Below, one piece after another: positions 3,001 to 36,000 of a DNA stretch of 64,000 nucleotides. The stretch comes from Mobula birostris (taxonomy: Eukaryota). The DNA lies in NCBI RefSeq assembly GCF_030028105.1, contig NW_027274036.1:496001-560000 (forward strand), in the 5' to 3' direction. Numbering within the stretch: the stretch's first letter is position 1; each line of letters begins with the position of its first letter. The notes under the pieces were generated by a model. That model was not told the origin of the DNA, searched no databases, and saw nothing but the letters and a program-made list of their open reading frames with translations. The translations under genes were made by a program, and so were the position numbers.

Positions 3001-3275
3001 ATACCACCTCCAGCTCCCCTTGGGGAAACACACCTTTAGACACATAATGCTCTTTGATAGCTCTGTGCATCTCCTCTCTCCTCATTCTCGACTTCCCCTT
3101 AAAAAGATTCAACCATTTGGCCACAGCTGCCAATTCTGCTTTCCTGGCATCCTCTAATGCCTCCAAGGTCAGCCCCTTTAGAAATTCCTCAATCTCCATT
3201 TCTGCTGTTTGCCTTTCCTTTCTTTCGGGAATTTTAACCCAATCAATTTAACCCGTCCCAAAGTTAGCGTTCAAA

Positions 3276-5992: not shown

Positions 5993-6032
5993 ATGATTGG
6001 AAAGTGGTATTTTCTCCTATCAATTCTGCAAG
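5993..6032 (+). CDS. Leader (signal peptide) exon [13 protein letters not shown]
   Basis: ATG at 5993, hydrophobic FLLSIL, phase-1 donor CAAG|gtacca. Joined to 6853 it gives [20 protein letters not shown], a plausible 17-aa signal peptide. An acceptor-like ttctcttttag ending at 5950 suggests an upstream non-coding exon. Confidence 0.65.
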
Positions 6033-9000
6033 GTACCAGCAACAGCAGCTCAGCTGATTAACTGTCAATGAGTTGGGATGGAAACTAATTTTGATAGAGG
6101 TTAACAGATTAGCACTCCCTTAAATATCCTTATAACACACATTGCTGCCATTCTGATTAGTGCTCCTTTAATTCTCCTTTAGTACTCCCACATTGCAGCC
6201 ATTCTGATTAGTGCTCCTTCAGTACACACACATTGTTGCCATTCTGATTAGTGCTTCTTTAATGCTCCTTTAGTACTCCCACATTGCAGCCATTCTGATT
6301 AGTGCTCCTTCAGTACACACACATTGTTGCCATTCTGATTAGTGCTTCTTTAATGCTCCTTTAGTACTCCCACATTGCAGCCATTCTGATTGTACAGAAA
6401 TCCAACAGTACTTGGAACCTACAGTTGTCCAGAGGCCACCCAGCAATCTCACGATTTAATCCTAGTCTATCAAGGGGCAATTTACAATGATCTACGAACC
6501 GGTATGTCTTTGGACAGTGGGAGGACGTGGTCATGGGGCAAATGTATAAACTTCTTACAGGCAGCAGCACGAATTGAACCCAGCTGGCTTGTACTGTAAA
6601 GCATTTTGCTGACCAATACGCTACCATGCTGCCTTATGTGGGATCTCCAGATTTGCAGTGCTGATAGTGGAGTATTGCTGGCATTGTTCTTGTGTCTGTG
6701 TAAACTCCTTCAGTATTACCACCATTACTGCATAGTGCTTACCAAGAATTCTGCAGTACTCTGAGTACACACCAACAGCAGTGTAACTCTGTCAACACTG
6801 AGGATCTTCTTCAATACTGTCTTGTTGCTTAATATTCATAATCTCTCCTCAGCTGTAGTGTCAGAGGAATGGACAGCCGACATTCAACAAGAAGTTACAG
6901 TGCGGAAGGGCCTGTGTGCACACATTCGGTGTCAATACAGCTATCCATCACGTCTGGCAAATGACCAACGGGTGGGAATCTGGTTTAACTCAAATAACCT
7001 GTTTTCATGGTCACAGATAGCCTTTCATTCCAAGAATAGCAGTCATATAATGCCAAAGTATCACCATCGGACCTGGCTCTCTGGAAACCTGAATGACAAG
7101 AACTGTTCCTTGAATATAAACAATGTTACACAGGAAGATGAAGGTCCTTATCACTTCAGAATTGAATTTAAAGACCTGGATCGCTATAGCTACTCCACCA
7201 TAACACAACTATGTGTTGATGGTAAGTGTTTTGTCTAATTATATAATGATAGACACTCAGCAGTCAGGGAGAAATGGCCAAACTGTGCTGATTTCCCAGT
7301 AACACAATTCACAAATCATTAATGCAGAATGGGATTATCAGTGACTTTGTTGTGCCTCCATCAGTGCTAACACAATCTCCAAATTCACTGTCTATGCTAT
7401 CATGTTATCTCCTTCACTTCTCTCTGTTATAAACTAAGTTACAGATGGACAACATTTTTACAGCACCCTTTATTTCCTCAGGATGTCTGAGCCTGCTTCC
7501 CAGTGTGGGTGGGCTCCATTAATGCCAGTGTGGGAACAGCCTGCTTCCCAGTGTGGCTGGGCTCCATTAATGCCAGTGTGGGAACAGCCTGCTTCCCAGT
7601 GTGGGTGGGCTCCATTAATGCTGGTATGGGAACAGCAAACAATATAGTGCAGCAATGCAGAGGGTCAAGCAGCATATGTGGCAGGAAAGGAATTTTTAAC
7701 ATTTCTAGTCAAAACCCTGCAACATTCTGTCCACTTCACAGCTCAATTTCCTGTCTATCACCAAACACAGCAGCCCATCTTGCAATCATCATTTTTGAGG
7801 TTAAAATAAAATGTAAGTCCCAGCACATCACACATTACCATCTAGACAAAATGACCTATTTATGCTAATACAGTCACTGGACATTAAGCACAGAAACTGT
7901 CCATTTAGTTCACCCTGTGCCGAGTCACGCCTGTCTGGTTCTGAAACACAGCTGTCTGTTCACCTCACAACAATTAACTTATCCAAATCTCCCCTATATG
8001 CTGCAATTCAGCCCCCATACACCACTTCTGTTGGCAGCTCTTTTCACACTTACATCACCTTCTGAGGGAAGACATTCTTCTTCAGATTTCTCTTAAATAT
8101 TTCACCTTTCACCCTGAAGCATTGGCCTCCAGTTGTAGTCTCACCCAACCAAAAAACATGCATGGATACACCCAATCTACATCCCTCATTACTTTGTATA
8201 CGTCTATATGATCTCCCCTCATTCTCCTGTATTCCAGGGAATAAAGTTCAGGAGGTCCACAAGTCCTGTCGATTTTCTCTGCATTCTTTTAAACTTATTG
8301 ATATATTTTCTATATTGTTTTTATTGGTTGGCTTATTTTACACAAAACAACATTAATTTTGTAGGTTTATATTACATAATTGGATCTTCCCAGCCTCTTC
8401 AAAAAAAGGCAACAATTATATCAGTGCTCAAGACTCTCTGTAATTTACCTATCACCACAGTAGGTCTATGGCAGGAATGATCTCAATGGCTCTTCACGTG
8501 GCCTTAGATCACCTGGACAATGCACACACCTCTGTCACAATGCTTTTATGTTGGCTATAGCTTAGCATTCAACACCATAATTCACACAGTTCTGATCGAT
8601 AAGCTACAGAACCTGGGCTTCTGTCCCTCTCTCTGCAAGTGGATTCTTGACCACAATCTGTGTGTATTGCTAATAATATCTCCTCCTCACTGATGACCAA
8701 CACTGGCACACCCCAAGGGCCCACTGTTCTTCTCTCTCGATACTCATGACTGTGTGACTCAAATGCCATTGATAAATTTGCTGATGATGCTACCATTATT
8801 CCTAGAATCTCAGATGGAGACGCTAGAGCATACAGGAGCAAAATATGCTAGCTAGTTGAGTGGTGTCGTACCAATAACCTTGCAATCAATGTCAGTAAGA
8901 TGAAAGAGCTGATTGTGAAGGATAAGATGAGGAAACATGAACCAATCCTCATAGAGGGATCAGAGTGGAGGGAGAGAGAGCAACTTCAAGTTCCTGGGTT

Positions 9001-12000
9001 TCAAGATCTCTGAGGATCTGACCTGGTCCCAACATATTGATGCAGCTATAAAGAAGGCAAGACAGCGGCTATATTTCATTAGGAGTTGAAGAGATTTTGT
9101 TTATCACCTAAAACACTCAAATTTCAATAGATATACCATGGAAAGCATTCTGACAGGCCACATCACTGTCTGGTATGGGTGGGTGCTACTGTACAGGACT
9201 GAAAGAACCTACAGAAAGTTGTAATATTAGTCAGCTCCATCTTGGGTACTAGCCTCCGTAATCTAAGACGTCTTCAAGGAGCGGTGCCTCAGAAAGGTGG
9301 CATCCATTATTAAGGACCCATCCCCCAGGGCATGCCTTCTTATTGTTACTGTCAGGAAGGAGGTGCAGAAGACTGAAGGCATACACTTAGCGATTCAGGA
9401 ACAGCTTCTTCCCCTCTGCAATCCAATTCCTAAAGGGACATTGAATCCATGAATATATATATATATATATATATATACACACTCTTATTTACCAATTTTT
9501 TTCCTATATTATGTATTGCATAGTAATGCTGCTACCGTTAACAAATTTCATGACTCATGCCGGTGACAATAAACCTGATTCTAATTGTTAATTTGCTTCT
9601 CCTTTGCCATCTAAAATCATAATAAGTGAGCAGACCCACCCTCCAGCTTTTCCAAGCTTCCTGCAGTTCCTCAACGTCACATAGTCACAGTTCAAACACT
9701 GCATAAACCTGAAAGCATGTACACTAGTCTTCAGTTGTTGTCAGACTCTTGAATGATAGGATGGACTGTTGACCTCAGCTACTTTGTTTTGATCCTGCAG
9801 TAAGTTTTTTACTTGCACTGCACTTTCTCTATAACTGTTGCTCTTTATTCTGCATTGTTATATTTTTGCCTTGTTTTACCTCAATGCACTGTGTAATGCT
9901 CTGTGTATACAAGCTTTTCACGTGACAATAATAAACCAATACTATGCACATTCAACTGCAAGGCCTTTAGATTTGTGTAACACCAGCCCTCTGGTGCACT
10001 TACTCTGTCATTTCCTGTCACAATCTGTTTCTCCTTTTCTATGTTTACACATCTGTTTTGTGACTTATTTCTACTTTTTGCTTTAACAATCTTTTCCAAC
10101 TTTGATCTCACTTCCTCCATAAATCCCACTATTTTGTTTAAAATCCTCGCAGAGAGAGGTGGGTGAGGGGTTTCAGTGCAAATTGTCTCCATTTGTTGTG
10201 ATAATTGCTAAATGTATATTGCAGAGACTCTGAGCCAGTGCTGCCTGAACAGGGAGCTGTGTCATCTCCCTAGCCTTGTCTGTTGAAGGTGCCCAGGCTG
10301 AATGTGAGGGAAACTCAGGAAACTCCCTAGCTCCAGGGCAATAGGACCATACAATTCTGTGAAGATTGAAGGTTGACAAGTCTGTCTGTTCTGAAGCACC
10401 TCATCCTTGGGTTTTGACAGCAGAAAGCTGTTGTTTTGGTTTTAATTTTCCACAGTTCACCGACATTGGGAAAGGTTGCATAAGATTGGAATGTTGCAAA
10501 GGTTTTTTTTCTCTCAAACAACAAGGAAGACATTGGGAGAGTACACATTAGGGAAAATAGTGGAAGCTATTATTGAAGATATTACAGGCAGAGCATTGGC
10601 TAGGTAAGAAGGTAAATAGGATTTTTACTGATTGACAAAATGGAATGCAAGTGTACACAGGGATAGGTAAAGAAAACAAAGATATGGTTGCAAATCTTTC
10701 AGAAGACTCCAAAGAAGAAAATTAACCTCTGAAGAGGAGGACACAAAGCATAAAGGTAGAGTATGGGCAAAGTGTGGTGAATAGAGTAAACCATGGAAAA
10801 CATGAAATAGACACCATTACAGCATAGAAACAAGCCCTTTGGCCCATCGAGTCCATGCTAAACTATTATTCTGCCTATTCCCAAGGGCCTACACATCGCC
10901 CTCCATACCCCTCCCATCCATGGATTTATCCATACTTCTCTTAAATGTTCAAATTAAACCCACATCCACTACTTCTGCTGGTAGCTCATTCCTCTGAGTG
11001 AAGAAATTTGCCCTCTTCCTCTTAAGTATTTCACCTTTCACCTTTAACATACGATCTCTACGTCTAGTCTCACCCACACTCAGTGAAGAAGGCCTTCCAT
11101 TTACCCTATCTATACCCTCATAATATAAAAAAAAGGTACGTCGTATCCAGAATTTTTCCAGTTAGCTGACGACTTCCTCCCACACTGCTCTGACGTAGCG
11201 GGAAATCACGTACGAGGCAAGTTACAGCAGTGGTTTGTCATTTTCTTTCTGCCAGGTGAGTTTTTAAAAGAGATCACCAGCTCATGAAATGCCTAAGCGT
11301 GCAGGGGAGCTGGCTGGATTCGAACTTGGGACCTCCCACCCCGCAGTCCAGCACTGATGCCACTATGCCACCAGCTGGGTCCCTCATAATATATACCTCT
11401 ACAAATCTCCTCTCATCTTCCTACGTTCCATGGAATTAAGTCTTACCCTATTCAACCTTCTACTACAACTCAGGTCCTCAAGTCCTGGTAACATTAGACA
11501 TTGAAGCAGAATTACACCACCTGGCCCATTGAGTCTTCTCCGCCATTTAATCATGGCTGATCCTTTGTTCCCCTCCTCAACCCCATTCCGCAGCCTGCTC
11601 CCTGTAACTTTTGATGCTGTATCCAATAAGAACCTATCAATGTCTGCATTAAATACACCTAACGACTTGGCTTCCACAGCTGCCTGTGAGAACAAATTCC
11701 ACAAATTCGCAACCTTTGGCTCAAGTCTGTTTTAGATGGACCCCCCCTATCCTGAAGCTGTGCCCTCTTGTCCTAGACTCCCCGACCATGGGAAACATCC
11801 TTGCCACATCTGCTCTGTCTAGGCCTTTCAACATTCAAAAGGTTTCAATGAGATCCCCCCTCATTCTTCTAAATTCCAGCGAGCACAGACCCAAAGCCAT
11901 CAAGCGTTCTTCGTATGATAACCCTTTCATTCCCGGAATCATCCTTGTGAACCTCCTCTGAACCCTCTCCAATGCCAGCACATCTTTTCTGAGATGAGGA

Positions 12001-18000: not shown

Positions 18001-21000
18001 ACTGAAGCCTCTTGAGCCAAGGTTGGCAAACTCTGCTTTCTCTGCCGGTAAATTATACTGCGAAGCAACTCTTAGTCTCGCCCTGTTGCGCCTACAACAA
18101 CTTGGCCATTAGTCTAATTATCAGTTCGTTTCTTTGAAAAACAGTGCAAGTGCATCTATTACTGCTAACGCTAACAAACTACTTTTGCAAAAGCAAGAAA
18201 AAATTGTCACCCAAAACAAGGGGAAGGCCAGAAAAAATTTCCAATGTGGCCCCTGTAAGGTGACCAAACACAAGTTACATATGCAGCCACATTTGAAATT
18301 TAAAATTAACAAAAGAATGCTACAGGCCAAACCAACCAAACCTCTCTCGCACACTCACTCTCACACTCTCCCAAACAGAGAGTCTGACTGGAGTCTGCTG
18401 CACTAGCACCAGCTCAACCCCGATAGCTGAAGTACTGGGGGACTGGAGGATAGCTAATGTTGTTCATATTTGCAAATTTTCACTCTACTCTTTTAATCTT
18501 ATTGATACATTTCTTATAGATAGGTGACAAGAACTGCACACAATGCTCCAAATTATGACTTACCAATGTCTTATATAACTTCAACATAGCATTCCAACTC
18601 CTGTATTGATTGATACAAAGGCCAACATGTCAAAAGCTCTCTTTACGATCCTATCTGCCTGTGATGCCACTTTCAAGGAATGATACACCTGTATTCCCAG
18701 ATCCCTCTGTTCTACTGCACTCTTTGGTTCCTGACCATGTAAGCCCCACCCTGGTGTCCTCCCAAAGTGCAACACTTCACTCTTGTCTGCATTAAATTCC
18801 ATCTACCATTTTTCAGCTTGTACAGATCATGCTGCAAGCTTTGATAGCCTTCCTCACAGTCAACTATGCTCCGATATTGGTTTCATCCACAAATTTGCTG
18901 ATCCAAATCACTGATGTAGATGACAAATAATAATGGACACAGTATCGATCCCCGTGCCGCATGACTAGTTACAGTCCTTCAGTCAGAAAGGCAACCATCT
19001 ACCACCACTCTCTGGCATCTCCCACGAAGTCAAATTCAATTCACCACCCAATCCTGAATGCCGAGTGACTGAACCTTCTTGACCAATCTCCCATGCAGGA
19101 CCTTGTCAAAGGCCTTACTAAAGTCCATGAAAACAACATCTAGCACCTTACCTTCATCAACATTCCTGGTACCTTCCTCAAAAAACTCTAAAATATTATT
19201 TAGACATGTGCAAAGCCATTTTGACTATCCCTAATTAGTCCCTGTCTATACAAATACTCATATATCCAGTCCCTTAGAACACCTTCCAATAAGTTACCCA
19301 CTACTGGTGTCAGGCTCACTGGCCTACAATTTCCTGGCTTATTCTTAGAGCCTTTCTTAAGCAACAGAACAACATTAGCTGCCTTCCAATCCTCTGACAT
19401 TTTCACCCATGGTTAAGGATGTTTTAAATATCTCTGCTAGGGCCCCTACAATTGCTGCACCAGCTTCACATAAAGTCTGGTCAGGTCATGGAGGTTTTTC
19501 CACCCAATATATCCATCCTTCAGAGTGGTATTTGCTCAGTACTACCCCTTCAGCTCCGTCCCTCCCATAATGCAATACTTCCTTGGTGCTGTCTGCCCTC
19601 ATATGCTGAACTTCCATAGAAACCCCTCCCACACTGTGCCACCCCTCAATGCCATCCCTTCTGCAGCATGGCATATGATTTGGCAACCCAGAGTATGGCA
19701 TCAGGGGTTGGAGACTTGAGCACGTAGATGAAGGACTGGTAAACTGACAGGCCATCCAATACCTAACATCAGTTATTTCTCTCTCGGCTGTAGTGTCAGG
19801 ACAAAGCAGAGCCAATACTCCAAGAGTTGTGACAGCACAGAGGGGGCTCTGTGCCTTTATTCCATGCCACTACCAATCGGACAAGAAGACCCGAGATGGA
19901 ATCTGGCTGAAGGATGAGTGCTCGACTCAAACAGTCATCTTCCACTCCAGTGATCCCAATCGTGAGTCACCAGGGTTTCACCATCGGACCCGGCTGTCTG
20001 GAGATCTAAAGAATGGTGACTGTTCCCTAATTATTGACAACGTCACAGAGAAGGATGAAGGCACTTATTACTTTAAAATTGAATTCGGAAAAGGGGAGCA
20101 GTTTGTCCACCTCTCCATAACACATCTCCGCATTACTGGTGAGTGCATTATATAATTAATTAGTTGTTGATCAGCTGTCAGTGGAAAGTTTTACCAATAC
20201 AGCTTAGTATAATGCAGTTTTGGACAATCAGTGACTTAGCAATGCCATCCATGTCCTTTCTTGTTCATAATGAGTGCAAAATGATGGGCCACTAGTTGTC
20301 CGACAAGGGGCCCGAGCACTTTGTTGAGGTAGTGAAACAGGCTTCTCCATCACTACTCGATGTTGTCCATTGAAAGTCCTCAGAGTGAAAGTAGGATCAG
20401 AGAAGTGGAAGAGAAGGAGAAACACGGGAATATTACTTGGGATTCCTAGTTTCCAGTAGATGGCAGGGTGTATAGTGAATAGAGTTGTACCTCAAAACTC
20501 CAACAACCCCAGTGGGTAACAACCTCTATGGGCTTTGTTCCTTTGACAGGTTGGGTTTCCCTCTGTTTCCTTCCACCTCTCAAAGATTAATTGCTTGGCT
20601 GTGATAATTTGCCCCAGTGTGTAGGCGATTGGGAGAATCTGGAGAAAGACCCCGGTTCCAGTGCAGGGGATGTCAGCCTGGGATATGTGATTAGGATCTG
20701 CAGTGGACACCCACTGGTTTAAATATGGAAATTGGTGGGTTTATCAAGCAATGTTAAATGTTGCTACTTTTTTCATCTGTAGCATCAGAGAAATGGAGAG
20801 TCCACGTGAAAGAAAGTATCACAGTGCAAAGGGGTATGTGTGCTTGGATTCCCTGTCACTTCAGTTACCCATCGTGCCTTGCAAATGAAACACGGGATGG
20901 AATCTGGGTTAAAGGAGGGAATCAGAGCCACCTGCCCGTAGCCTTTCACTCCATGGATCGCAATAAAGAGACACTGAAGTTCAAGCGTCGGACCTGGCTG

Positions 21001-24000
21001 GCCGGAGACCTGAAAGACGGCAACTGTTCCCTGGTTATAAACAATATCACACAAGAAGATGAAGGTTCTTATACTTTCAGAATTAAATTTAAAAACCAGG
21101 ATCAATATAGTTATCACTCCATAACACAGCTGAATGTTACTGGTAAGTACATTGTAATATTATTAAACAAAAAATGTATGACAGTCAGTATAATAGTGTC
21201 AACCATCCCTATGCCCCCTTAGATGGTGCCTGGCCTGCAATGTTCTTCCAGCAAAGATCTAAGCATATGCAGTCTCTTGTTTAATCATGAACTCTGCTGA
21301 TTTCCAATTAATACAAGTCACAGCTTAGTATAATGTAGTGTAAGAATATTAGTAACCTGGCATAAACATGGTGTTCTGCTGGAAATCCTGAGCAACACTC
21401 AGCAAGTCAAGAAGCATCTGTAGACGTGAATAAACAGTCGGCGTTTTGGCCTGAGAGCCTTCATCAGCACTGAAAAGGAAGGGTCTCATCCTGAAATATG
21501 GACAGTTTATTATCTGCAGAGATTCTGCCCGACATGCTAAGCTTGTCCAGCATTCTGTGTGTGTTGCTCAGCTACTTGGCCTTCCAGTTCCCTATCTGAT
21601 AATTACGATAAATTCCCTCATCCATCAATATTCTCAACTGCAGATTTCTCTCTAATTGTGCTGTCTCATCATTAAAGAAACAGCAGGAATTGCTTTTCTG
21701 TAACACCTGTCATGTCCTCACTGTCCCTGCCAATTTGCCCCACACTAGCACGGCAGTGTGGGAGGGGGAGCAGTCAGTCTGCAGACAGCAGCACGCACAT
21801 CACCAAGGTAAAAGGGCCAGGCACACTGTTTTAAAGGCTTTATTCAAGGATGAATTGTCTCCATGCTGCTGTGAACAGGAGTACACCACAAGATGGGAGA
21901 ACCTGAGGGAAAACTGCTTCCTCAGAGGGGACATACTAAGACAGCACCATACTGTCAGAGGGGAGATACTGACAGACACCAGACTCTCAGAGGGGAGATA
22001 CTGAGAGAGCGTCACACTGTCAGAGGGGAGATATTGAGGGACACCACACTCAGAGGGGAGATACAAAGGGAATACAACATATCAGAGGGGAGATACTGAG
22101 AGACACCAGACTCTCAGAGGAGAAATACTCAGAGAGCATCACATTGTCAGAGGGGACATACTGAGCTAACATCATGCTGTCAGAGAGGAGATACTGAGGG
22201 AATATCAAACTGTTGGAGGGGAGAAACTGAGAGACACCACATTTTGAGAGGGAAGATACTGAGAGCCACCGCACTGTCAGAGGAGAGATACTCAAGGACA
22301 CCATATGGTCAGGGGGGAAATACTGAGAAAGCATCACACTGTCAGAGGGCAGATACTGAGGGGACTCACACTGTCAGAGAGGATATACAGAGGGACACCA
22401 CACTGTCAAAGGGGAGACACTGAGAGACACCACACTGTCAGAAGGGAGATACTGAGGGACACCACACTGTCAGAGGGGAGATACTGAGGGAATACAACAC
22501 TTTGAGAGGGGAGATACTGAGAGAGCACCACATTGTCAGAGGGAAGATACTGAGAGACATCATACATTCAGAGGTGGAGACACTGAGGGAACATCACACT
22601 GTCAGAGGGGAGATACTGAGGGAAAACACACTGTCAGAGGGGAGATACTGAGAGACACCACACTGTCAGGGGGGATGGACTGAAAAAACCACACTGTCAG
22701 ATGGGAGTTATTGAAGGACATCACACTGTCAGAAGGGAGATACAAAGGGAATACAACACTGTCAGAGGGGAGTGTGTGCTCCCCCGGCGTGAAGAGGAGA
22801 AGGGAACGTTCCTGCAAGAGGGCAGGGGATGTAGATGCGGGGGAGTCCCAGGAAGGGGTGGGAATCCGGGTAGGGGTTGGTTCTAAACCTGAGTCCCCAG
22901 ATGTAGCCACCAGTCCTGGGGTAGCTGGTGTGGTTGTGCAAAAAGCTTGTGATAGCCCTGTTTGCACAAATGAGGCAGCCCTGGAGGCCTCCCCCCAGGA
23001 CCTACAAGTCAGCGCCTCTCTGGAGGCCAGTGTACCGAATAATGTAAGAGGAGACGAGACAAAGCTCTCTCATTCTCAGCACCAGGCTGCTTGTGAATCC
23101 CTTGGACCAGAGCTGCCGGGTTCCCCTCTATGCCTGCCCCCTGGGGAGGGCGATATTCTGTGCACGTCGACCCCAGCAATTAATGACTTGCAGGGAGTCC
23201 CTGGGGATTGTCCCTCTACTGTCGCAAATGTGGATGAGGCTGATGCGACGGTGGAGCGGGCAAGTAAGAACGAGGTGCCCGCTACGCGGTATGGGTCACA
23301 AGCGCAGCCATCTTTTGGAACATGCGGGGAGGCCGATGGGGATTCTGTCTGCAGTGACGGGTTGGAGGGGGACTCTTTCGATAATGAAATAATGGACATC
23401 CTCACCCCTCCTGAGAAGTCCCTATTAATACCTGTAGAGGAAATTAAGCATTTTATTCTCACCTCTGAGGGTGCCAAGCACCGGCCTCAACTAGCCTCGC
23501 TTCGTTGGCCCAGCATGCCGAGGCTGGTGAGGTCCCTGCGAGTCATCCTCGGACGAAAGGGAAAGGGAAAGAGGAATGCGGTGGCGGGGAACGACAGACG
23601 GCAACTAAAATCTTTCCTAGATGACCTAGTAAGGGACATCAGAGGGAGAAGCAGCCTCGCTCCTACGGGGGATGGTGGGTCACAGGGTGTCGCTGGTACC
23701 GCTCGAGCCCGGAAGGCAAAAAGTAACCTTGCTTTCTTTCCGGACAGTGTGGTGGAGGGCGCCTCCGCTCTCACCGAAATGGGCACAGCTGCTGAGACCT
23801 AGTGTGCTCCCGCCATGAAGCTTACCATAGCTAGTCTCAATGTAAACGGCAGCAGGGGTCCTCTTCGCAGGCATAACAATCTCTCAGTCCTCAGGGATGG
23901 GCGGTATACGGTGAGTTTCCTGCAGGAAACCCATACCATCCCTGGGGACGAGTCTGCTTGGCTCCTGGAGTGGCGGGGCGGGGTCTACATGAGCCACCTC

Positions 24001-27000
24001 AGCTCCATTTCTAGCGGGGTGGGGATCCTGTTGGCCCCGACCTTCCAGCCAGTAATCGAAAGAGTCCAAGACGTTGTGCCTGGCCGTCTGCTCCACCTGG
24101 CTGTGCGCCTGAATGGCGTACCATTGCATTTTATCAATGTGTATGCTCCCAGACGCCGTGTGATGCAGACACGCCTATTCTGTCAGCTGTCCACCCTGCT
24201 GAGCTCCATCGATCCTGGGGATTGCGTCATCCTCGGGGGAGATTTCAATTGTACCCTCGAGGCTCGGGCCTCCAACGCGACCCAGCATCGGCAAAAAAGT
24301 TAAAGGAGCTAGTCGGCTCCTTTGACTTGGTGGACAGCTGGCGGAATCTTCACCCCAACTCTAGCGCCTTCTCGAGAAGGTCCAGAGAGGGGGGTTCCAG
24401 GATAGACCGCATTTACATCTCTCGGGCCTACGTCTCCCGCGTGTCGGCGTCCTCCATGCGGCCGGTGTCGTGCTCGGATCATCACTTTGTGTGGATGGAA
24501 TTTATTCCACTACACCCTCGGGTGGGATCCGGGTATTGGCATTTTAAAAACCGGCTGCTGGAGGACAGCCGATTCCGGGATTCGTTCCAAGCTTTCTGGG
24601 TCTCCTGGAAGGAGAGACGGAGAGAGTTCTGCTCCCTACGGCTATGGTGGGATGTGGGCAAAGCCCACATCCGGTTTTTATGTTGGGAGTACACTAGGGG
24701 GTCGACAAAGAGGCGGAGCTCTGAGGTTGAGCGGCTTGAGAGAGCGTTGCTTGACCTGGAGTCCCGCCTCGGTCCGACCGCTGGAGATCAGCAGCTGTGG
24801 CAGGAATACCAGGAGAAGAAGGACGCACTAAGGAACCTGCAGCTTCAGCAGTCCCGAGGTGCGTACGTGAGGTCACGGATCCAAATGCTGCAGGATTTGG
24901 ACCGTGGCTCACCCTTCTTCTACTCGTTGGAAAGGTGGCGGGGAGTTCAAAAGCAGCTAGTGGAGCTGCTGGCTGCCGATGGCTCCTCCATCACGGACCC
25001 TGATGGAATTAACAACGAGGTCCGTTCATTCTATCGGTCCTTATTCTCGCCTGATCCGTCAAATGCGGAGGCGTGTAATGAGGTCTGGAAGGATTTGCCT
25101 AAGGTCAGCCCAGAGGACGCAGTGCGTCTGGATGTCCCCCTGACTCGGGAGGAGCTGTCCACTGCCCTTCGGCAACTCCGGAGGGGCAAGTCCCCTGGTT
25201 TGGATGGACTGAGTGTTGAGTTTTATCAGGCTTTTTGGGATGTCCTGGGGGATGATTACAGCCTTGTCCTAGGGGAGAGCCTAGCCACCGGAGAAATGCC
25301 CCTCTCATGGCAAAGAGCTGTTGTGGTCCTACTGCCCAAGAAGGGAGACCTCCGCTTGCTAAAGAACTGGCGGCCGGTCTCCCTCTTGTGCGCGGACTAC
25401 AAGATCCTCGCCCGGGCAATGGCCAACCGTCTGGGTTCGGTAATTGGACAGGTGGTCCATCCTGACCAATCTTACACAGTCCCGGGCCGCTCCATCCAGG
25501 ACAATGTCCACCTAGTACGGGACCTGATCCACCTACTCCAGGAGACTGGGACCCCGGCAGCGTTTCTTTCTCTTGACCAGGAGAAGGCTTTTGACCGGGT
25601 GGACCACAGTTTCCTGGTGGGCACCCTGCAGGCTTTTGGGCTCGGACCACACTTTGTGGCCCGAGTTCGGCTCCTGCACTCTGCCGCAGAGTGCCTAGTT
25701 AAGATTAACGGATCATTGACAGGACCTATCCACTTCTGAAGAGGAGTGCGTCAAGGGTGCCCCATGTCCGGTCAACTGTATGCGATCTGTGTCGAGCCAT
25801 TCCTCAGCCTTCTTCGGCGAAGGCTGACAGGTCTGGTTCTGCGCGAACCGGACATGGGGGTCGTCCTCTCGGCCTACGCCGATGACGTACTCCTCATGAT
25901 GACAGACTCCTGTGACCTGCGGAGGATGCGCGAGTGCCAAGATGTTTTCTCGGCGGCATCCTCCGCCAGGATCAACTGGGTGAAATGTTCCGGACTCTTA
26001 GTAGGCCAGTGGCAGGTGGACTCCCTTCCGGAGGAGATGAGAGCTTTTGAGTGGAGCACCAGACATCTTCTCTATCTGGGAGTCTACCTGAGTCCTTCTG
26101 GGGAGATCTGGCTGGCGAACTGGCAGGACCTGGAGACAAAGGTCATGGCCCGGCTAGGGCGCTGGTCAGGCCTTCTCAGGGTGCTTTCCTATCGAGGCAG
26201 GGTGGTGGTCATAAACCAGCTGGTGGCCTCCATGTTGTGGTACCGGATGGTCACCTTGCCCCCCCACCGCCCCTTTTGTCGCAAGAATGCAGAGGAAGCT
26301 AGTGGACTTCTTCTGGGGAAACAGGAAGCACTGGGTCTCTGCAGCGGTTCTGAGTCTCCCAGAAGGAGAGGGCGGACAGTCGCTGGTGTGTGTACGCACA
26401 CGACTGGCGGCTCTCCGCCTCAGGACTCTGCAGAGATTCCTGTACGCTGAGAACCCTCCCAGGTGGCACATGTTGGCGACTTTCTTCCTCCGGAGGGGCT
26501 GCTGTCTTGCCGAAGATATGCAGCTACCACCGGCGGGCGTCAGCCGTGCTGCTTTGCAGAGGCTGCCCGGCTTCTATCAGGATCTACTGAGAGTCTGGAA
26601 CATGGTTGCCTCAGGCCGGGAATCCCCTCCTCTGGCAGAGGGCGGGGTCCTGGCCGACCCTTGCCCCGTCTCAACGGATGTCAGTGCGGCTCAGGTATGT
26701 GGAACGACTCGGGCTGAGCTGCTCGTCGGGCCCAGGCCCCGCAGCCTTGCCCGAGAGACGAATCCACACAACTTGAGCCGTCTTTCATCGACACCCACAA
26801 TCCCATTCAGGGATGCAGGCAGGAGGTACCTTTATGGGCTGCTGCTCCACACCCTCCACCTCCTAGCATTTGTCCACCGTCCCGACACGCCATGGCGGTC
26901 AGTCTTTCCACCTGGAGGTGAGGGGGGTCCCCAATGGAAGCCCCTTTACAAGGGAGTCCTTCCCATGCACCTTGGGGATCTCGGCTGGAGGGTGCTGCAT

Positions 27001-30000
27001 AAAGCGGTGCCCTGCAATAAGTTCTTTAGTTTGTACACGGATCTCCCAGCCGCGTGTCACTTCTGCGGGCTGGAGGAGACTGTGTACCATATGTACGTGG
27101 AGTGTGTGAGGCTGCAGCCCCTTTTCGCGTATTTGCGTGGGCTGCTTCTCGCTTTCTGGTTGCATTTCAGTCCCACCCTATTCATATATGGTCATCCAGT
27201 AAGGAGGGGGGCACAGAGGGATGAGGATGTCCTTGTCAACTTGCTCCTGGGGCTGGCGAAAACTGCCATCCGTGGCTCCTGGAAAAGGGTGGCAGGAGGT
27301 TCTCCCCGGGCGGACTGCCTGGCTATGTTTAGGGGGTATGTTCGTGCCCGGGTGAATATTGAAAAGGAATACGTACAGTCCACGGCGACCGTCGAGATGT
27401 TCCGGGACCGTTGGGCTCCGCGGGGTGTAAATGCCATCATTGATGAGGATGGCAATATATTGGTTTAACATGTATTGTCTGTTTGTGGTGTAGTAAATGT
27501 GTTAGTCACTGGTTTTGTAAATATTGTATAGCACCGACATTTGTAATAAAGAATTTTGTAGAAAAAAAAAGAGGGGAGATACTGAGAGACACCAGACTCT
27601 CAGAAGGGAAATACTCCGGGAGCATCACACTGTCAGATGGGACATACTGAGCTAACATCACGCTGTCAGAGAGGAGATACTGAGGGAATATCAAATTGTC
27701 AGAGGGGAGATACTGAGAGAAAACTTTCTGTTATAGGGGAGATACAGAGACAACAGACTGTCGTAGGGGAGATACTGAGGGACATCACACTGTCAGAGGG
27801 GAGATTCTGAGGGAATATCAAACTGACAGAGGGGAGAATCTGAGAGATACCACGCCTTGAGAGGGGAGATACCGAGGGACACCACACTGTCAGAAGGGAG
27901 ATACTGAAGGACAGTACACTGTCAGAGGGGAAATACTGAGGGAACATCACAGTGTCAGAGGGGAGATACTGAGAGACACCACAGTGTCAGAGGGGAGATA
28001 ATGAGAAATTGCACTGTCAGTGGGGAGAAACTGAAAGATAACACTCTGCCAGAAGGGAGATACTGAGATACTCCACACTGTCAGACAGGAGATTCTAAGT
28101 AACACCACATTGTCAGAGGGAAGATACAGAGAGATAACACTGTCAGAGGGGAGATATTGAGGGACACCATGCTGTCAGAGCAGAGATAAAAAGGGAATAC
28201 AACACTGTTGGAGGGGAGATACTGAAAGACACTAGACTCTCAGAGGTCAAACACTGAGAGAGCTCACACTGTCAGAGGGGAAATACTGAGAGAGCTCACA
28301 CTCTCAGAGGAGACAGACTGAGCTAACATCACTCTGTCAGAGAGGAGATACTGAGGGAATATCAAACTGTCAGAGGGGAGAATCTGAGAGATACCAAGCC
28401 TTGAGAGGGGAGATACTGAGGGCCACCACACTGTCAGAGGGGAGGTACTGAGGGACACTACACTGTCAGAGGGGAGATACTGAGAGAAACCTCACTGTTA
28501 GAGGGGAGATACAGAGACAACAGACTGTCAGAGGGGAGATACTGACGGACTTCACACTGTCAGAGGGAGATATCGGGAGACCACCATACTCTCAGAGGGG
28601 AGAAACTGAGAGGGGTTCATACTGTCAACGGGGAGATATTGAGGGATTATCACCCTGTCAGAGCGGAGATACTGAGAGACATCACGCTGTCAGATGGGAG
28701 ATACTTAAAGAGCATCACACTGTCAGAGGGGAGATACTGAGAGACGCCACACTGTCAGAGAGGAGATATTGAGGGATCATCAGACTGTCAGAGGGGAGAC
28801 ACTGAGAGACACCACACTGTCAGATTGGAGATAATTAAAGAGCATCACACTGTCAACGGGGAGATACTAAGGGACACCACTCTGTCAGAGGGGAGATATT
28901 GAAGGAACACCACACTGTTAGAAAGGAGATACTGAGTGATAACACAAGGTCAGACGCAAGATGCTGAGAGACACCATACTGTCAGAGAGGAGGTACTGAG
29001 AGACGTCACAATGTCAGGTGGAAGATATTGTGGGACACCACACTGTCAGAGGGGAGATACAATGGGAATACAACACTGTTGGAGGGGAGATACTGAGAGA
29101 CACGAGACTCTCAGAGGGGAAATACTCAGAGACCATCACACTGTCAGATGGGACATACTGAGCTAACATCACTCTGTCAGAGGGGAGATACTGAGGGATC
29201 AAACTGTCAGAGGGGAGATACTGAGAGAAACCACACTGTCAGATGGGAGATATTGAGGGACACCAGACTGTCAGAGGGGAGATACAAAGGGAATACAACA
29301 CTGTTGGAGGGGAGATACTGAGAGACACCACACTGTCAATGTGGAGATACTAAGGGACACCACACTGTCAGAGGGGTGATACCGAAGGACATCACACTGT
29401 CAGAGGGGAGATACTGAGAGAAACCACACTGTCAGATGGGAGATTTTGAGGGACACCAGACTGTCAGAGGGGAGATACAAAGGGAACACTACACCGTTGG
29501 AGGGGAGATACTGAGAGACACCAGACTCTCAGAGGGGAAATACTCAGAGAGCATCACACTGTCAGAGGGGACAAACTGAGCTAACATCACTCTGTCAGAG
29601 AGGGGATACTGAGGGAATATCAAACTGTCAGAGGGGAGAATCTGTAAGATACCACGCCTTGAGAGGAGAGATACTGAGGGACACCACAGTGTCAGAGGGG
29701 AGATACTGAGAGAAACCTCACTGTTAGAGGGGAGATACAGAGACAACAGACTGCCAGAGGGGGGATATTGAGGGAAACCACATTATCAGAGGGGAGATAC
29801 AAAGGGAATACAACACTGTTAGAGGGGAGATACTGAGAGACATCACACTGTCAGGTGGGAGATATTGAAGAACATCACACTGTCAGAGGGGAGATATTGA
29901 GGGACACCAGACTGTTAGAGGGGAGATACATAGGGAATACAACACTGTTGGAGGGGAGATACTGAGAGACACCAGACTCTCAGAGGGGAAATACTGACAG

Positions 30001-33000
30001 AGCATCACACTGTCAGAGGGGACATACTGAGCTAACATCACGCTGTCAGAGAGGAGATACTGAGGGAATATCAAACTGTCAGAGGGGAAAAACTGAGAGA
30101 CACCACACTTTGAGAGGGGAGAGACTGAGGGACACCACACTGTCAGAGGGGAGATACTGAGAGACACCACACTGTTAGAGGGGAGATGCAGAGACAACAG
30201 ACTGTCAGGGGGAGATATTGAGGGAAACTTCATTGTCAGAGGGGAGATACAAAGGGAATACAACACTGTTAGAGGGGAGATACTGAGACACATCACACTG
30301 TCAGATGGGAGATATTGAGGGACACCACACTGTCAGAGGAGAGATACAAAGGGAATACAACACTGTCGGAGGGGAGATACTGAGAGACACAAGACTCTCA
30401 GATTGGAGATACTGAGAGAGCATCACACTGTCAGAGGGGACATACTGAGCTAACATCACTCTGTCAGAGAGGAGATAGTGAGGGAATTTCAAACTGTTGG
30501 AGGGGTGATACTGAGAGACAACACACTTTCAAAGGGGAGATACTGAGAGACATCACACTGTCAGATGGGAGATATTGAGGGACACCACACTGTCAGAGGG
30601 GAGATACAAAGGGAATACAACACTGTCGGAGGGGAGATACTGAGAGACACAAGACTCTCAGATTGGAGATACTGAGAGAGCATCACACTGTCAGAGGGGA
30701 CATACTGAGCTAACATCACTCTGTCCGAGAGGAGATAGTGAGGGAATTTCAAACTGTTGGAGGGGTGATACTGAGAGACAACACACTTTCAAAGGGGAGA
30801 TACTGAGAGACATCACACTGTCAGAGAGGAGATACCGAGGGAACATCACACTGTCAGAGGGGAGATTCTGAGGGAATACTACACTTTGAGAGGGGAGATA
30901 CTGAGAGAGCACCACATTGTCAGAGAAAAGATGCTGAGAAACATCATACTGATAAATGAGAGATTCTGAGGGAACATCACACTGTCAGAGGGGAGATACT
31001 GAGAGACACCAAACTGTCAGAGGGGATATACTGAGAAATCACACTGTGAATGGGGAGATATTGAGAAATCACACTGTCAGTGTGGAGAAATGGAGCGATA
31101 ACGCTCTGTCAGAGGGGAGGTCCTGAGGGACACCACACTCTCAGAGGGGAGATAGCAGGGGAGCACCATACTCTCAGAGGTGAGATATTGAGAGAAGTTC
31201 ACAATGTCAATGGGGAGATACTGAGGGAACATCACACTGCCAGAGGAGAGATACTGAGAGACACCACACTGTCTGAGAGAAGATACTGAGAAAAATCACA
31301 CTGTCAGAGGGAAGATACTGAGAGACGTCACACTGTCAGAGGGCAGATATCGGGAGACCACCATACTCTCAGATGGGTGATACTGAGATACCACCACATT
31401 GTCAGAGGGGAGATATTGAGAGACCACCACACTGTCAGAAGGGAGATACTAAGAGACATCAAACTGTTATGGGGGAGATGGTAATGGACACTCTAATGTG
31501 AGAGGGGAAATACTGAGGGACATCACACTGTCAGATGGGAGATACTGTGGGTCACCAGACTGTATGAGGGGAAATACTGAAAATAACCACATGTCAGAGG
31601 GGAGATACTGAAAGTAAACCACACTGTCAGAGTGAAGATACTGAGATACCACCACACTGTCAGAGGAGAGATACTGAGAGACATCAAACTGTTATGGGGG
31701 AGATAGTGATGGACACCCTAATGTGAGATGGGAAATACTGAGGGACATCGCACTCTCAGATGGGAATTCTGTGGGTCACCATACTGTATGAGGGGAAATA
31801 CTGAGAATAACCACACTGTTAGAGTGGAGATACTGGGAGACAACAGACTGTCAGAGGTGAGATAATGAGAGACATCACAATGTGATAGGGGAGATACTGA
31901 GGGACACCACTCTGTCAGAGGGGAGATACTGAGAGAAGCCACACTGTCCATGGCGGAGATAGTGACAGAATCCCACTGTTGGAGTGGAGGTACAGGGGGA
32001 CGCCACACTGTCAGAGGGGAGATACTAAGGGACACCACAGGGTCTGAAGGGAGATACTTAGAGACACAACACTGTCAGATGAGAAATACTGAGAGACATC
32101 ACACTGTGAGAGGGGAGATACTGAGGGACACAACATTATCAGACGGGAGATACTGAAGGACACCGCACTGTCAGCAGGTGAATACTGAGGGACATCACAC
32201 TGTGAGATGGGAGATACTGTGGGTCACCAGACTGTATGAGGGGAAATACTGAAAGTAAACCACACTGTCAGAGGGGAGATATGGTGAGAGCTCCACACTG
32301 TCAGAGGGGAGATACTGAGAGACATCACACTGTCAATGTGGAGATACTAAGGGGCACCACACTGTCAGAGGGGAGATATTGAGGAATCATCACCCTGTCA
32401 GAACGGAGATACTGAGAGACACCACACTGTCAGAGCGGAGATATTGAGGGATCATCACTCTGTCAGAGGGGAGATACTGAGAGACATCACATTGTCAATG
32501 TGGAGATACTAAAGGACACCACACTGTCAGAGGGGTGATACCGAAGGACATCACATTGTCAGAGGGGAGATACTGAGAGAAACCACACTGTCAGGTGGGA
32601 AATATTGAGGGACACCAGACTGTCAGAGGGGAGATACAAAGGGAATACAACACTGTTGGAAGGGAGGTACTGAGAGACACCAGACTCTCAGAGGGGAAAT
32701 ACTGACAGAGCATCACACTGTCAGAGGGGACATACTAAGCTAACATCATGCTGTCAGAGAGGAGATAGTGAGGGAATATCAAACTGTCAGAGGGGAGAAA
32801 CTGAGAGACACCACACTTTGAGAGGGGAGATACTAAGGGACACCACACTGTCAGAGGGGAGATACTGAGAGACACCACACTGTCAGAGGGGAGATACTGA
32901 GGGAATACCACACTTTGAGAGGGGAGCTACTGAGAGACATCACTCTGTCGGAGGAGAGATATCGAGGGAACATCACAGTGCCAGAGGACAGATGCTCAGA

Positions 33001-36000
33001 GACACCACACTGTCAGAGGGAAGATACTGAGAGACCACCACACTGTCAGAGGGGAGATACTGAGAGACATCAAACTGTTATGGGGGAGATAGTGATGATG
33101 TGAGAGGGGAAATACTGAGTAAATACATCGCACTGTCAGATGGGAGATACTGTGGGTCACCAGAGTGTATGAGGGGAAATACTGAGAATAACCATACTGT
33201 TAGAGGGGAGATACTGAGAGACAACAGACTGTCAGAGGGGAGATACTGAAAGTACACCACACTGTCAGAGGGGAGATATGGTGAGAGCTCCACACTGTCA
33301 GAGAGGAGATACTGAGACAATTCACTCACTCAGAGGTGAGATACTGAGAATTCACTCAGTCAGAGGTGAGATATTGAGAGACATCACAATGTGATAGAGG
33401 AGATACTGAAGGACACCACTCTGTCAGATGGGAGATACTGAGAGAGCACCACACTGTCAGAGGGGAGAAACTGAGAGAAGTCATACTGTCATGGGGGAGA
33501 TAGTGACAGAATCCCACTATTGGAGAGGAGGTACAGGGGGACTCCACACTGTCAGAAGGGAGATACTGAAAGACATCACACTGTCAGAGGGGAGATACTG
33601 AGGGAAGATCACACTGTCAGATGGGAGATACTGAGAGACATCACACTGTCCGAGGGGAGATACTGAAGTACACCACACTATCAGTGGGGAGATACTGAGG
33701 TAACATCACACTCTCTGAGGGAAGATACTGAGAGAATACTGCTCTCTCAGAGGACAGATTCTGAGGGACATCACACTCTCAGAGGGGAGATACTGAGGGA
33801 AACCACATTGTCTGAGAGGAGATACTGAGAGAGAACCAAACTGTAAGAGGGGAGATACTGGGAGGCATCACACTATCAGTGTGGAGGTACTGAGGGAACA
33901 CTACTCTCTCTGAGGGGAGATTCTGAGAGACATCACACTGTCAAAAGGAAGATTCTGAGGGTACACTGCTCTCTTAGAGGTGAGATTCTGAGGGAACACC
34001 ACTCTGTTCTAGTGAGGGTTCTTCTAACCCAGTACTCAGGGACCTCAGAGTGAAGGCGTTTGGAGTGAGGGACAAATAGCCAGCCCTTCTTTCCGAATGA
34101 TCCTTCCTACTACTCGTTACTCTGCTGCTCTGACACCACGATGCATCATTTGGACAGAGTAGCTACCCTTAGACCTGTGTCTCCAGCAGTGCAGCAATGT
34201 CTCATTAGTGACATAGGATGTGTCCACCTGAAATTTGGGATGAATCCATAGTGGGGACCTGAGGCTGGGGGTGAGAGTCTGTATGATGTTCCTTGTCTCC
34301 TCTGTGCAGTGTCGGAAGAGTGGAGAGCTGACAGTCCACGAGATGTGACGGCGCAGAGGGGTTTGTGTGCCCGGATTCCATGCCACTACAGTTATCCATC
34401 GCACGTGGACAATAAACCCTGGGATGGAGTCTGGATGAAAGATGAATGTCTGACTCAAACGGTCACTTTCCACTCTAAGCATCAGAGTCGTGTGTCCCCG
34501 AGGTTTCATCGTCGGACCTGGCTGTCCGGAAAAATGAAAGATGGCGACTGTTCCCTGGTTATAGACAATATCATGCAGGAAGATGAAGGTTATTATTACT
34601 TCAAAATTGCATCTGAAAATGTGGATCGACATAGCTATCTACCCACAACACAGCTCCATGTTACTGGTGAGTGCCTAGTATAATTTTCCAGCAATTCAGG
34701 AAATATGATAAACTGCTGTAACGTCAGTCACACCTTCGTACAGATCATTACAAACCAGGCATGTCAAATATTAAATTGATACACCCCCTATTTTAAATGG
34801 TCATTGAAGGGTTAATGAACATTGTGTCCATCCTGCTGTGGATAGTGATTAATTAAACTAGGGCAGAATCCTGAGAGTCATGAACCAGTGCCACCGACCT
34901 GTTCATCCAGCAGTATCAAAGGTGCTGAGGGTGAAAGTGCTTTGAGCAGAGGGAGAGAATCTGTCAGGATTGTTCCTCCAGCACAGCAGTCATTTACTAC
35001 TTGTTGTATTTATCTAAAAGGATCCATTTCTCTGTGTTAGATTTCACAGATAAGCCCTCGATATTCCCCGCTGAAATGGTTGCAGGAAAGCCAGTGAACA
35101 TAAGCTGCACCTTCAACATCACGTGTGGTGGATCGACACCCAACTTCACCTGGATCACCCCCACAGATGTATTGGCGTTAAACTCGAGCAGTGTAACCGA
35201 GTGGGGTGACACTCTGACATATACAGCTGTTCTGACCCTCACCCCAGCGCTCAAACACCACGGGCAAAATCTCACCTGCAGAGTCAAATACCCACTTGTT
35301 TCATCAGAGCAGACAGTCACACTAACTGTGCGGTGTAAGTATGGGCAGCATTCAGTGACATCTTAACATAATGCAGCAATTCCTCTGGACCACCTATCTG
35401 TTAGTGTAGTTCTTGCTCACCCAGAAAACACATCCCCCCATCAGTATTGCCCCCTCCAACAGTTCAAAGTTTACTAATGCTCTGCACACACTGTTCGGAC
35501 ACTGCCTCAGAGCAGATTCTCTGCTTTGGCAATGCTACCTCGATTCTCGCATGTCCAGCTTTCTCTCCTCTGTGAGTGCAATCCTCCCTCACCACGATCC
35601 ATCCTACCACGCAGCACTCCCTCAGTGCGACCAGTGCTGCACTCTATTGGCACTGCCATTCTCACTGTGAAGCACTCCCTCAGTGCTACAGGGCTGTACT
35701 CTATGGCAGGGGTCTCCAACCTTTTTTGCATTATGGACCGGTTTCATATTGACAATATTCTTGCGGACCGGCCGACCGGAGGCGGGGGTGGGGTGGGTAG
35801 GGTTGCCAACGGACAAGAGTATCAGTCAAATACGTTGTTTACCTCATGAAAGACTACAATAACCATGAAGCCTTGCGTGGGCACCAGGGCACATGTGTGT
35901 ACGTGCCGATTTTTTTCCCCTACAAATCGTTTTTGGCGATTCTGTTGGGTGGGGGGGGTGTTAATCACGACTGGAATATGGGTGATAACTGGCTAATACA

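Follow-up and report, generated by a model that had tools for sequence, protein, structure and literature searches.

Our results point to a Siglec-family gene in the ray Mobula birostris that encodes four tandem V-set domains in one polypeptide. The gene lies within a 64,000-nucleotide stretch of contig NW_027274036.1 (RefSeq assembly GCF_030028105.1, positions 496,001 to 560,000 of the forward strand; hereafter the window, numbered from its first letter), where its nine exons run from 5993 to 61094 on the plus strand and include all four V-set exons. The V domains (V1 to V4) alternate between arginine and lysine at the residue known to be essential for sialic acid binding by Siglecs (PMC13358205, PMC6288428). 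The account that best accommodates the evidence, and one that we regard as moderately probable, is that of an expressed four-V Siglec gene formed by duplication of a pair of V exons, in which V1 would supply the sialic acid-binding site and the lysine-bearing domains would be otherwise employed.

An initial annotation of the window had read the four domains as an R-K-R-K series, and that reading was borne out. The F-strand motifs are YHFRIE (7149-7166), YYFKIE (20066-20083), YTFRIK (21070-21087), and YYFKIA (34594-34611), all on the plus strand, and the key codons are AGA, AAA, AGA, and AAA, such that the Arg and Lys states differ by one G/A transition. When a profile of the four domains was compared with known structures, the R/K column fell on Arg119 of Siglec-5 and Arg97 of sialoadhesin, and the column of the N-terminal tryptophan fell on Trp2 of sialoadhesin. 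The essential F-strand arginine (YxFR) is present in V1 and V3, which retain the canonical triad of A-strand Trp, F-strand Arg, and G-strand aromatic residue, while V2 and V4 have Lys. With respect to the flanking aromatic residues, V1, V3, and V4 have the Trp along with YSY or HSY; V2, as had also been noted at the outset, has neither; it reads SGQSRAN at its N terminus and FVH in the G strand. V2 lacks YPS.LAN as well.

The motifs said to unite each pair of domains were likewise all found in an alignment of the four exons: YPS.LAN, AFHS, and FRI.FK..D.YSY in V1 and V3, and W.KDEC.TQTV.FHS and GDCSL.IDN in V2 and V4. The KDEC.TQTV segment of the second pair is derived, and of 187 related V domains none but V2, V4, and their orthologs has a cysteine at this point of KDEC, a degree of sharing that exceeds chance. 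Judged by sequence, then, the V domains fall into a consensus-like type A (V1 and V3) and a derived, lysine-bearing type B (V2 and V4), and the typing is real and old; it is kept in three other ray species.

Several lines of evidence place the gene among the Siglecs. All four V exons match the Pfam models V-set (37-57 bits, cutoff 26) and Ig_CD22 (30-36 bits, cutoff 27). The best solved relatives of the four-domain profile are Siglec-5, sialoadhesin, Siglec-7, and CD33 (E values of 5e-18 to 2e-15), followed by Siglec-8, Siglec-10, and MAG (5e-18 to 1e-14 for the whole list); the scores for Siglec-5 (68 bits) and sialoadhesin (65 bits) are nearly equal, and MAG reaches 57 bits. The names that NCBI gives to relatives are similarly mixed, including CD33-like, MAG-like, and Siglec-5, -8, -10, -12, and -13. 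The domains also show the Siglec cysteine pattern, with two strand-B cysteines five residues apart and a strand-E cysteine (CSL), an arrangement that yields one intrasheet bond and leaves a cysteine free for an interdomain bond, and these three residues are invariant in V1 to V4 and align with the cysteines of Siglec-5 and sialoadhesin. Finally, a C2-set_2 match, a hydrophobic membrane span, and a match to the V-C2 fold of CD33 indicate the V-C2 module of a type I membrane protein. The fold search used an AlphaFold model of V3-V4-C2 from the stingray Hypanus sabinus (mean predicted local distance difference test score [pLDDT] of 76, predicted template modeling score [pTM] of 0.55), whose V4-C2 part best matched the CD33 and Siglec-10 structures 5IHB, 7AW6, and 9O6N, with template modeling scores of 0.69-0.77 by target. 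These two-domain structures have the same V plus C2 fold as the ray model, but they contain a single Arg-bearing V domain, and the sequence identity amounts to only 26-28%. By its fold, cysteine pattern, Arg motif in V1 and V3, and V-C2 module, the gene classifies as a member of the Siglec family.

The exon structure argues for one gene. Its encoded order is a leader, V1 to V4, a single C2-set domain, a transmembrane segment, and a tail rich in tyrosines, and splicing the nine exons in silico yields an uninterrupted reading frame of 703 amino acids with canonical borders at every exon. The leader, or signal peptide, exon (5993-6032) ends in a phase-1 GT donor; it was recovered by tblastn with residues 1-14 of a Hypanus model (P0001, 86%), and the leader in the model of the devil ray M. 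hypostoma (P0162) is identical to it. The V exons occupy 6853-7221 (V1, type A, with Trp and YSY present and the Arg codon at 7158-7160), 19794-20138 (V2, type B, with the Lys codon at 20075-20077 and the extra KDEC cysteine), 20783-21142 (V3, type A, with the Arg codon at 21079-21081 and an extra B-C loop cysteine in YPSC), and 34310-34666 (V4, type B, with the Lys codon at 34603-34605 and the extra KDEC cysteine). Each has AG/GT borders and phase 1 at both ends, and each V motif sits inside an open stretch of 135-157 codons. Because 6853 is the first base of the V1 exon and 34666 the last of V4, the span given in the initial annotation corresponds to the outer borders of these two exons. Downstream are the C2-set exon (35041-35334; Pfam C2-set_2, E value of 3.4e-08), which is the sole copy within the window, and the exon for the stalk and transmembrane segment (37430-37550), which encodes a hydrophobic span and whose junction TVR-LELSLQEM is also found in the M. 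hypostoma model. Two cytoplasmic exons complete the gene, all of whose exons lie on the plus strand. The first (47540-47654, AG/GT borders) includes HYYTNC, and the second (60984-61094) encodes EYKLN, VYENF, and IYVNM before the stop; tblastn with the tail of a model from the stingray Hemitrygon akajei (P0151) matched them at 85% and 79%, respectively. With a single C2 exon and a single transmembrane exon in the window, the V exons belong to one gene rather than four.

Transcript data support the conclusion that the four V domains form one expressed polypeptide. We aligned four public RNA-like runs to positions 19500-21500 of the window. Contig depth was confined to the V2 and V3 exons, with none in the 644-bp intron between them, and the splice joint from 20137/20138 to 20782/20783 (GT..AG), which connects V2 to V3, was seen in three runs from two studies. 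The V2 acceptor at 19794 was used in RNA contigs, and one 187-nucleotide contig begins at this acceptor and continues for 133 letters that are unlike the intron. Furthermore, a 752-nucleotide contig (run X1) carries V2 and V3 and then passes from 21142 directly into the first bases of V4. The V1 exon was represented by word contents of 0.86, 0.61, 0.39, and 0.25 in the four runs, and the V1-V2 junction was not directly seen in contigs over positions 19500-21500, which counts against a fully joined chain.

It could be argued that the four V exons do not make one protein at all but belong to separate genes, are decayed relics, or serve as alternative exons that exclude one another. They are, after all, scattered over 28 kb of repeat-rich DNA, and one Hypanus model suggests that some exon skipping may occur or that there may be a shorter paralog. 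Yet one C2 exon and one transmembrane exon serve all four V domains, the four frames are open with splice sites intact, the X1 contig spans V2 and V3 and reaches into the beginning of V4, and models with four V domains exist in both M. hypostoma and Hypanus. For V2, V3, and V4, separate genes or mutually exclusive exons are ruled out by the RNA contigs, and we consider this alternative as a whole to be highly improbable. The Hypanus model just mentioned (P0153; XP_059819156.1) joins V1 directly to V4, followed by C2 and the transmembrane segment, with V2 and V3 skipped. Its scaffold is a separate one of 177 kb, and the model may represent an exon-skipping isoform, a copy from a haplotype, or a paralog of shorter form.

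Orthologs in other rays reveal which features of the array have been retained. The M. hypostoma protein (P0162; 701 amino acids, named Siglec-12 by NCBI) differs at 15 of 703 positions, has matching exon junctions, and reads R-K-R-K; its tail is two residues shorter and ends in IYANM. In Hypanus there are two four-V models with a leader, four V domains, C2, and a transmembrane segment (P0154 and P0001), and Hemitrygon is represented by a V3-V4-C2-transmembrane-tail model (P0151). The stingray accessions are XP_059838704.1 and XP_059815055.1 for Hypanus and XP_072914621.1 for Hemitrygon; like that of M. hypostoma, these are automatic database predictions named by similarity. The stingray and devil ray orthologs share the layout described here as well as the Lys of V2 and V4, but the stingrays differ in reading R-K-S-K, with Ser in place of the V3 Arg beside a deletion in the AFHS region, and in a V4 without its starting Trp. 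Across rays, therefore, the V1 Arg and both Lys residues are conserved and the V3 Arg is not, and the essential arginine is present in V1 of all four species. Compared with Hypanus, V1, V2, and C2 are each 84% identical, V3 80%, and V4 74%, which suggests that the Lys domains are no less constrained than V1 or C2. In trees, each V domain and its ortholog formed a group with 100% support.

How the four domains arose is a harder question. The initial annotation had proposed that an A-B pair was duplicated to give A-B-A-B, and part of the evidence favors that history. Within the gene, the closest pairs at both levels are V1-V3 (53% identity for protein, 69% for DNA) and V2-V4 (54% and 71%), compared with 40-50% and 60-69% for other pairs. 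The cysteine of the KDEC segment, private to V2 and V4, points the same way. A tree built with only paralogs from the same genome united V1 and V3 with support of 79/78. In addition, a quartet analysis of the four ortholog groups favored (V1,V3)(V2,V4), with a proportion by resampling of estimated log-likelihoods (RELL) of 0.94 when every column was used and 0.90 when V4 was masked; taken one at a time, the parts of the exon gave 0.80-0.85. The alternative groupings had P values in the approximately unbiased (AU) test of 0.057 with all columns and of 0.012 and 0.117 with masking.

The larger trees were unstable, in part because V4 is a mosaic. The first ~115 nucleotides of V4 (34310-34425, plus strand) share 96-98% identity with the V exon of a neighboring Arg-type paralog, L005 (G000:C10:358016-358369, minus strand), while identity over the remainder is 51-80%. 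The introns upstream of the two exons are unlike each other, and V4 of M. hypostoma carries the same tract. From this sequence pattern, the segment is best read as a gene-conversion tract. With the tract masked, the best tree contained (V1,V3) at 73/69 and (V2,V4) at 89/71, and when L005 was dropped, a free search returned both pairs. In a tree with 51 rows that included orthologs, neither V1+V3 (P = 0.15) nor V2+V4 (P = 0.19) was rejected by the AU test; indeed, no AU test rejected either these pairs or a V2+V3 grouping. The joint AU searches under LG+F+G4 were partly trapped, as a jointly constrained tree beat singly constrained ones, and we use them only to show nonrejection.

Several observations weigh against a duplicated pair. 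The same 51-row tree recovered V2+V3 at 98/87 and placed V4 with L005 at 98/89. With L005 dropped, a tree constrained to V2+V3 was 3.8 log-likelihood units better than the free search, and once M. hypostoma was included, the search preferred (V4,(V2,V3)) at 55-58% bootstrap, with V2+V3 at 58/71, although imposing the two pairs as constraints there lowered the log-likelihood by just 4.5 and 1.9 units. V1 often stood apart in large trees, beside a single-V protein of sawfish. Moreover, the motifs common to V1 and V3 (YPS.LAN, AFHS, and FRIEF...YSY) represent a consensus found throughout the chondrichthyan family and hence say nothing about kinship between these two domains. The key arginine is absent in 35 of the 187 related domains, 13 of which have Lys; given that one transition separates Arg from Lys and that Arg loss is recurrent in the family, two independent changes to Lys would be easy. 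For estimates of dN/dS, comparisons between paralogs are saturated, with third positions 48-65% identical.

These observations can be gathered into a different history, in which single exons were duplicated in another order. V2 and V3, which are 644 bp apart, would be tandem sisters with V4 near them, Lys would have arisen twice by parallel G-to-A changes, and the likeness of V2 and V4 would reflect convergence or an old conversion of the C-C' region. Besides the grouping of V2 with V3 in the best trees of three runs and the advantage of the V2+V3-constrained tree just described, the physical proximity of V2 and V3, the ease of a parallel Lys gain, and the fact that gene conversion does occur within this cluster all speak for such a history. 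Against it, V2-V3 identity is among the lowest (45% for protein and 62% for DNA, versus 54% and 71% for V2-V4), and the quartet analysis disfavors the V2+V3 order (AU P values of about 0.06-0.12). The DNA identity between V2 and V4 is even along the whole exon rather than confined to one tract, and the KDEC cysteine is seen nowhere else among the 187 domains. We view serial duplication of single exons as possible, though clearly the less probable history.

An older origin has also to be weighed. Under this scenario, a shark-like ancestor had a first V, a V with YPSC, and C2, and each A later gained behind it an inserted type-B exon from a single-V lineage lacking Arg, so that the split between V1 and V3 would predate that between sharks and rays. 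The B-C loop cysteine of V3 is typical of the non-first V domains of sharks (20 of 22, and no first V domain) and is equally compatible with a two-V ancestor and with pair duplication, a further point that tells against the latter. With V4 masked, moreover, the V2+V4 clade stood beside the Arg-less lineage at 82/86 (L014 with Lys, and Hemitrygon P0037 with Glu and P0077 with Gly). In contrast to type B, this lineage varies at the residue, which is Lys in L014 and Glu in P0037. The link to L014 and P0037, however, vanished from the trees in which L005 was dropped or M. hypostoma added. Furthermore, V1 never grouped with the first V domains of sharks, nor V3 with the non-first ones, and two separate insertions of one exon type would be required. 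We consider this origin unlikely.

The introns offered little help. A 33- to 43-bp element with 77-85% identity recurs 60-220 bp downstream of V1, V2, and V3 (7281-7361, 20199-20252, and 21290-21362) and is missing downstream of V4. As a marker of a duplicated unit, intron homology was rejected, with only these scraps in common and similar traces in paralog introns. The succession of intron sizes (13, 0.64, and 13 kb) was likewise rejected as a repeated unit: the two 13-kb introns are filled by unrelated sequence, LINE (long interspersed nuclear element) fragments in one and satellite in the other, and their similar size is attributable to this repeat fill. Both rejections also detract from the case for a duplicated pair.

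Taken together, the quartet, the pairwise identities, and the KDEC cysteine favor A-B-A-B, while the instability of large trees and the consensus nature of the V1/V3 motifs count against it. The grouping of V1 with V3 and V2 with V4, which had been put forward as the test of the proposal, was recovered when the tract was masked or L005 dropped and gave way to V2+V3 in the 51-row and M. hypostoma-added trees. A duplicated pair is thus the favored and a plausible history on the sequence comparisons, standing about level with all other histories combined. The most likely course of events would be that an A-B exon pair was duplicated long ago, before the divergence of manta rays and stingrays, with the record blurred later by the V3 Ser of stingrays, the V4 conversion tract, and the unrelated repeats that fill the introns.

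What the domains do can be anticipated from the pattern of conservation. V1 has the full triad in all four species and would sit at the membrane-distal tip, for which reasons it is predicted to be the conserved sialic acid site. In Mobula alone, V3 may provide a second site. The initial annotation had envisaged two active sites separated by spacer domains; the conserved V1 Arg agrees with one of these, but the loss of Arg from stingray V3 indicates that conservation does not extend to a design with two sites, and the idea is weakened. V2 and V4, which have no Arg and in the case of V2 no Trp, are unlikely to be canonical sialic acid binders on the basis of these residues. In sialoadhesin, an Arg-to-Lys change at residue 97 (R97K) reportedly weakens binding. 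Nevertheless, the conservation of V2 and V4, their conserved Lys, and their private cysteine suggest a constrained role, either as structural domains or in binding some other ligand.

The cysteines provide a clue to how the chain may be held together. In shark proteins with two to six V domains (P0002-P0006 and P0163-P0178), the YPSC cysteine is confined to non-first V domains, which suggests a covalent link from one V domain to another. V3 of the rays has this cysteine and V2 and V4 have that of KDEC instead, while V1 has no conserved extra cysteine, its Cys134 being Arg in M. hypostoma. The spare cysteine of strand B, retained in every V domain, is presumably the one that forms the interdomain bond to domain 2 in known Siglecs, as with C36-C169 of CD33. 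We infer that the one extra cysteine of each non-first V domain pairs with the interdomain cysteine of the preceding domain, and the number of cysteines would fit four interdomain disulfides along the chain. In the numbering of the 703-residue conceptual protein, the pairs predicted on this basis are Cys35-Cys179, Cys156-Cys283, Cys271-Cys418, and Cys391 with either Cys513 or Cys519.

A more elaborate function can be imagined for the duplicated pair. The Lys domains would then be neither degenerate nor simple spacers. The A-B unit might be a two-domain recognition cassette that is used twice, with the conserved Lys pocket of type B binding a different ligand, for example a modified sialic acid or some other anionic glycan, and the KDEC cysteine stapling B to the preceding A, yielding a bispecific lectin rod. 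The KDEC disulfide of such a cassette may be of a kind not seen in other Siglecs. We find this proposal rather doubtful.

The cytoplasmic side of the protein is less conventional. There is no Lys or Arg in the membrane span, where we looked for a charged residue that could recruit DAP12, and none of the tail tyrosine motifs (HYYTNC, EYKLN, VYENF, and IYVNM) matches the pattern (I/V/L/S)xYxx(I/V/L) of an immunoreceptor tyrosine-based inhibitory motif (ITIM). Instead, the tail has three YxN motifs and one YxxM, the terminal IYVNM. These departures concern the mode of signaling, not the lectin fold.

The gene belongs to a large family in a repeat-rich setting. At least 47 Siglec-type V exons occur in the 4.0-Gb ray genome in two clusters (G000:C9:122.8-126.2 Mb and G000:C10:0.29-0.65 Mb), and most of them retain Arg, with the Lys of L014 (C10:289365) and the Glu of its Hemitrygon counterpart P0037 as departures. 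One of these paralogous V exons matches a Mobula birostris protein without any difference. Within the gene, one satellite with a 32/65-bp unit (21922-34007) makes up ~12 kb of the V3-V4 intron, and another with a 33/65-bp unit (38267-44310) takes up ~6 kb of the intron after the transmembrane exon. The two have opposite GC skew, share the word ACACACTG, and contain long spurious open frames. Retroelement frames also lie around and within the introns (1332-3035 and 62433-63998 on the minus strand, 49741-50517 and 54199-54930 on the plus strand), including a gag-like frame of 568 amino acids and several LINE-type reverse-transcriptase fragments.

More generally, our findings add to a picture in which receptors with two to six V domains in tandem have been assembled time and again among sharks and rays. 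Models with four V domains appear as automatic NCBI predictions in Mobula, Hypanus, and a catshark, and our literature searches found no paper on multi-V Siglecs of cartilaginous fish. The one study of fish Siglecs that these searches returned, conducted on teleosts, stated that fish lack CD33-related Siglecs (PMC7226832). While a Siglec with several V domains is known already, the four-V arrangement reading R-K-R-K appears to be an undescribed variant. Such a gene represents a natural test of the role that a Siglec V domain plays after it has lost its Arg, of how V domains are covalently chained, and of whether multivalency within a chain matters for the recognition of sialoglycans. The practical stakes are modest: the gene is of interest to comparative immunology and introduces no new principle.

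Among known systems, the closest mammalian parallel is Siglec-12 of primates (Siglec-XII, or S2V), in which tandem V-set domains precede C2-set domains (PMC6288428). Siglec-12 resembles the ray protein in that the essential Arg has been lost from a V domain (R122C in humans), but it has two V domains instead of four, and no alternation of Arg and Lys types has been described for it. The two also differ in the tail, which carries an ITIM in Siglec-12 and YxN and YxxM-like motifs with no canonical ITIM in the ray. Since V duplications are recurrent and lineage specific in sharks and rays, the tandem V domains of the ray gene and of mammalian Siglec-12 likely had independent origins, and the name Siglec-12 on ray relatives stems from automatic annotation. 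The multi-V proteins of sharks are nearer in design, with tandem Siglec V domains before one C2-set_2 domain and, as in the ray gene, extra cysteines in the non-first V domains. Examples are the three-V XP_038670873 and the four-V P0164 ("Siglec-12 isoform X1") of Scyliorhinus canicula, and P0163 of S. torazame with six V-set stretches. Their V domains, where scorable, retain Arg and are near-copies of one another, and none is of the KDEC type; the one exception with respect to Arg is Hemiscyllium P0177, whose second V has Lys. Judging from the sequences examined, the ray gene is the only one of these receptors in which a conserved Lys type alternates with Arg domains across species.

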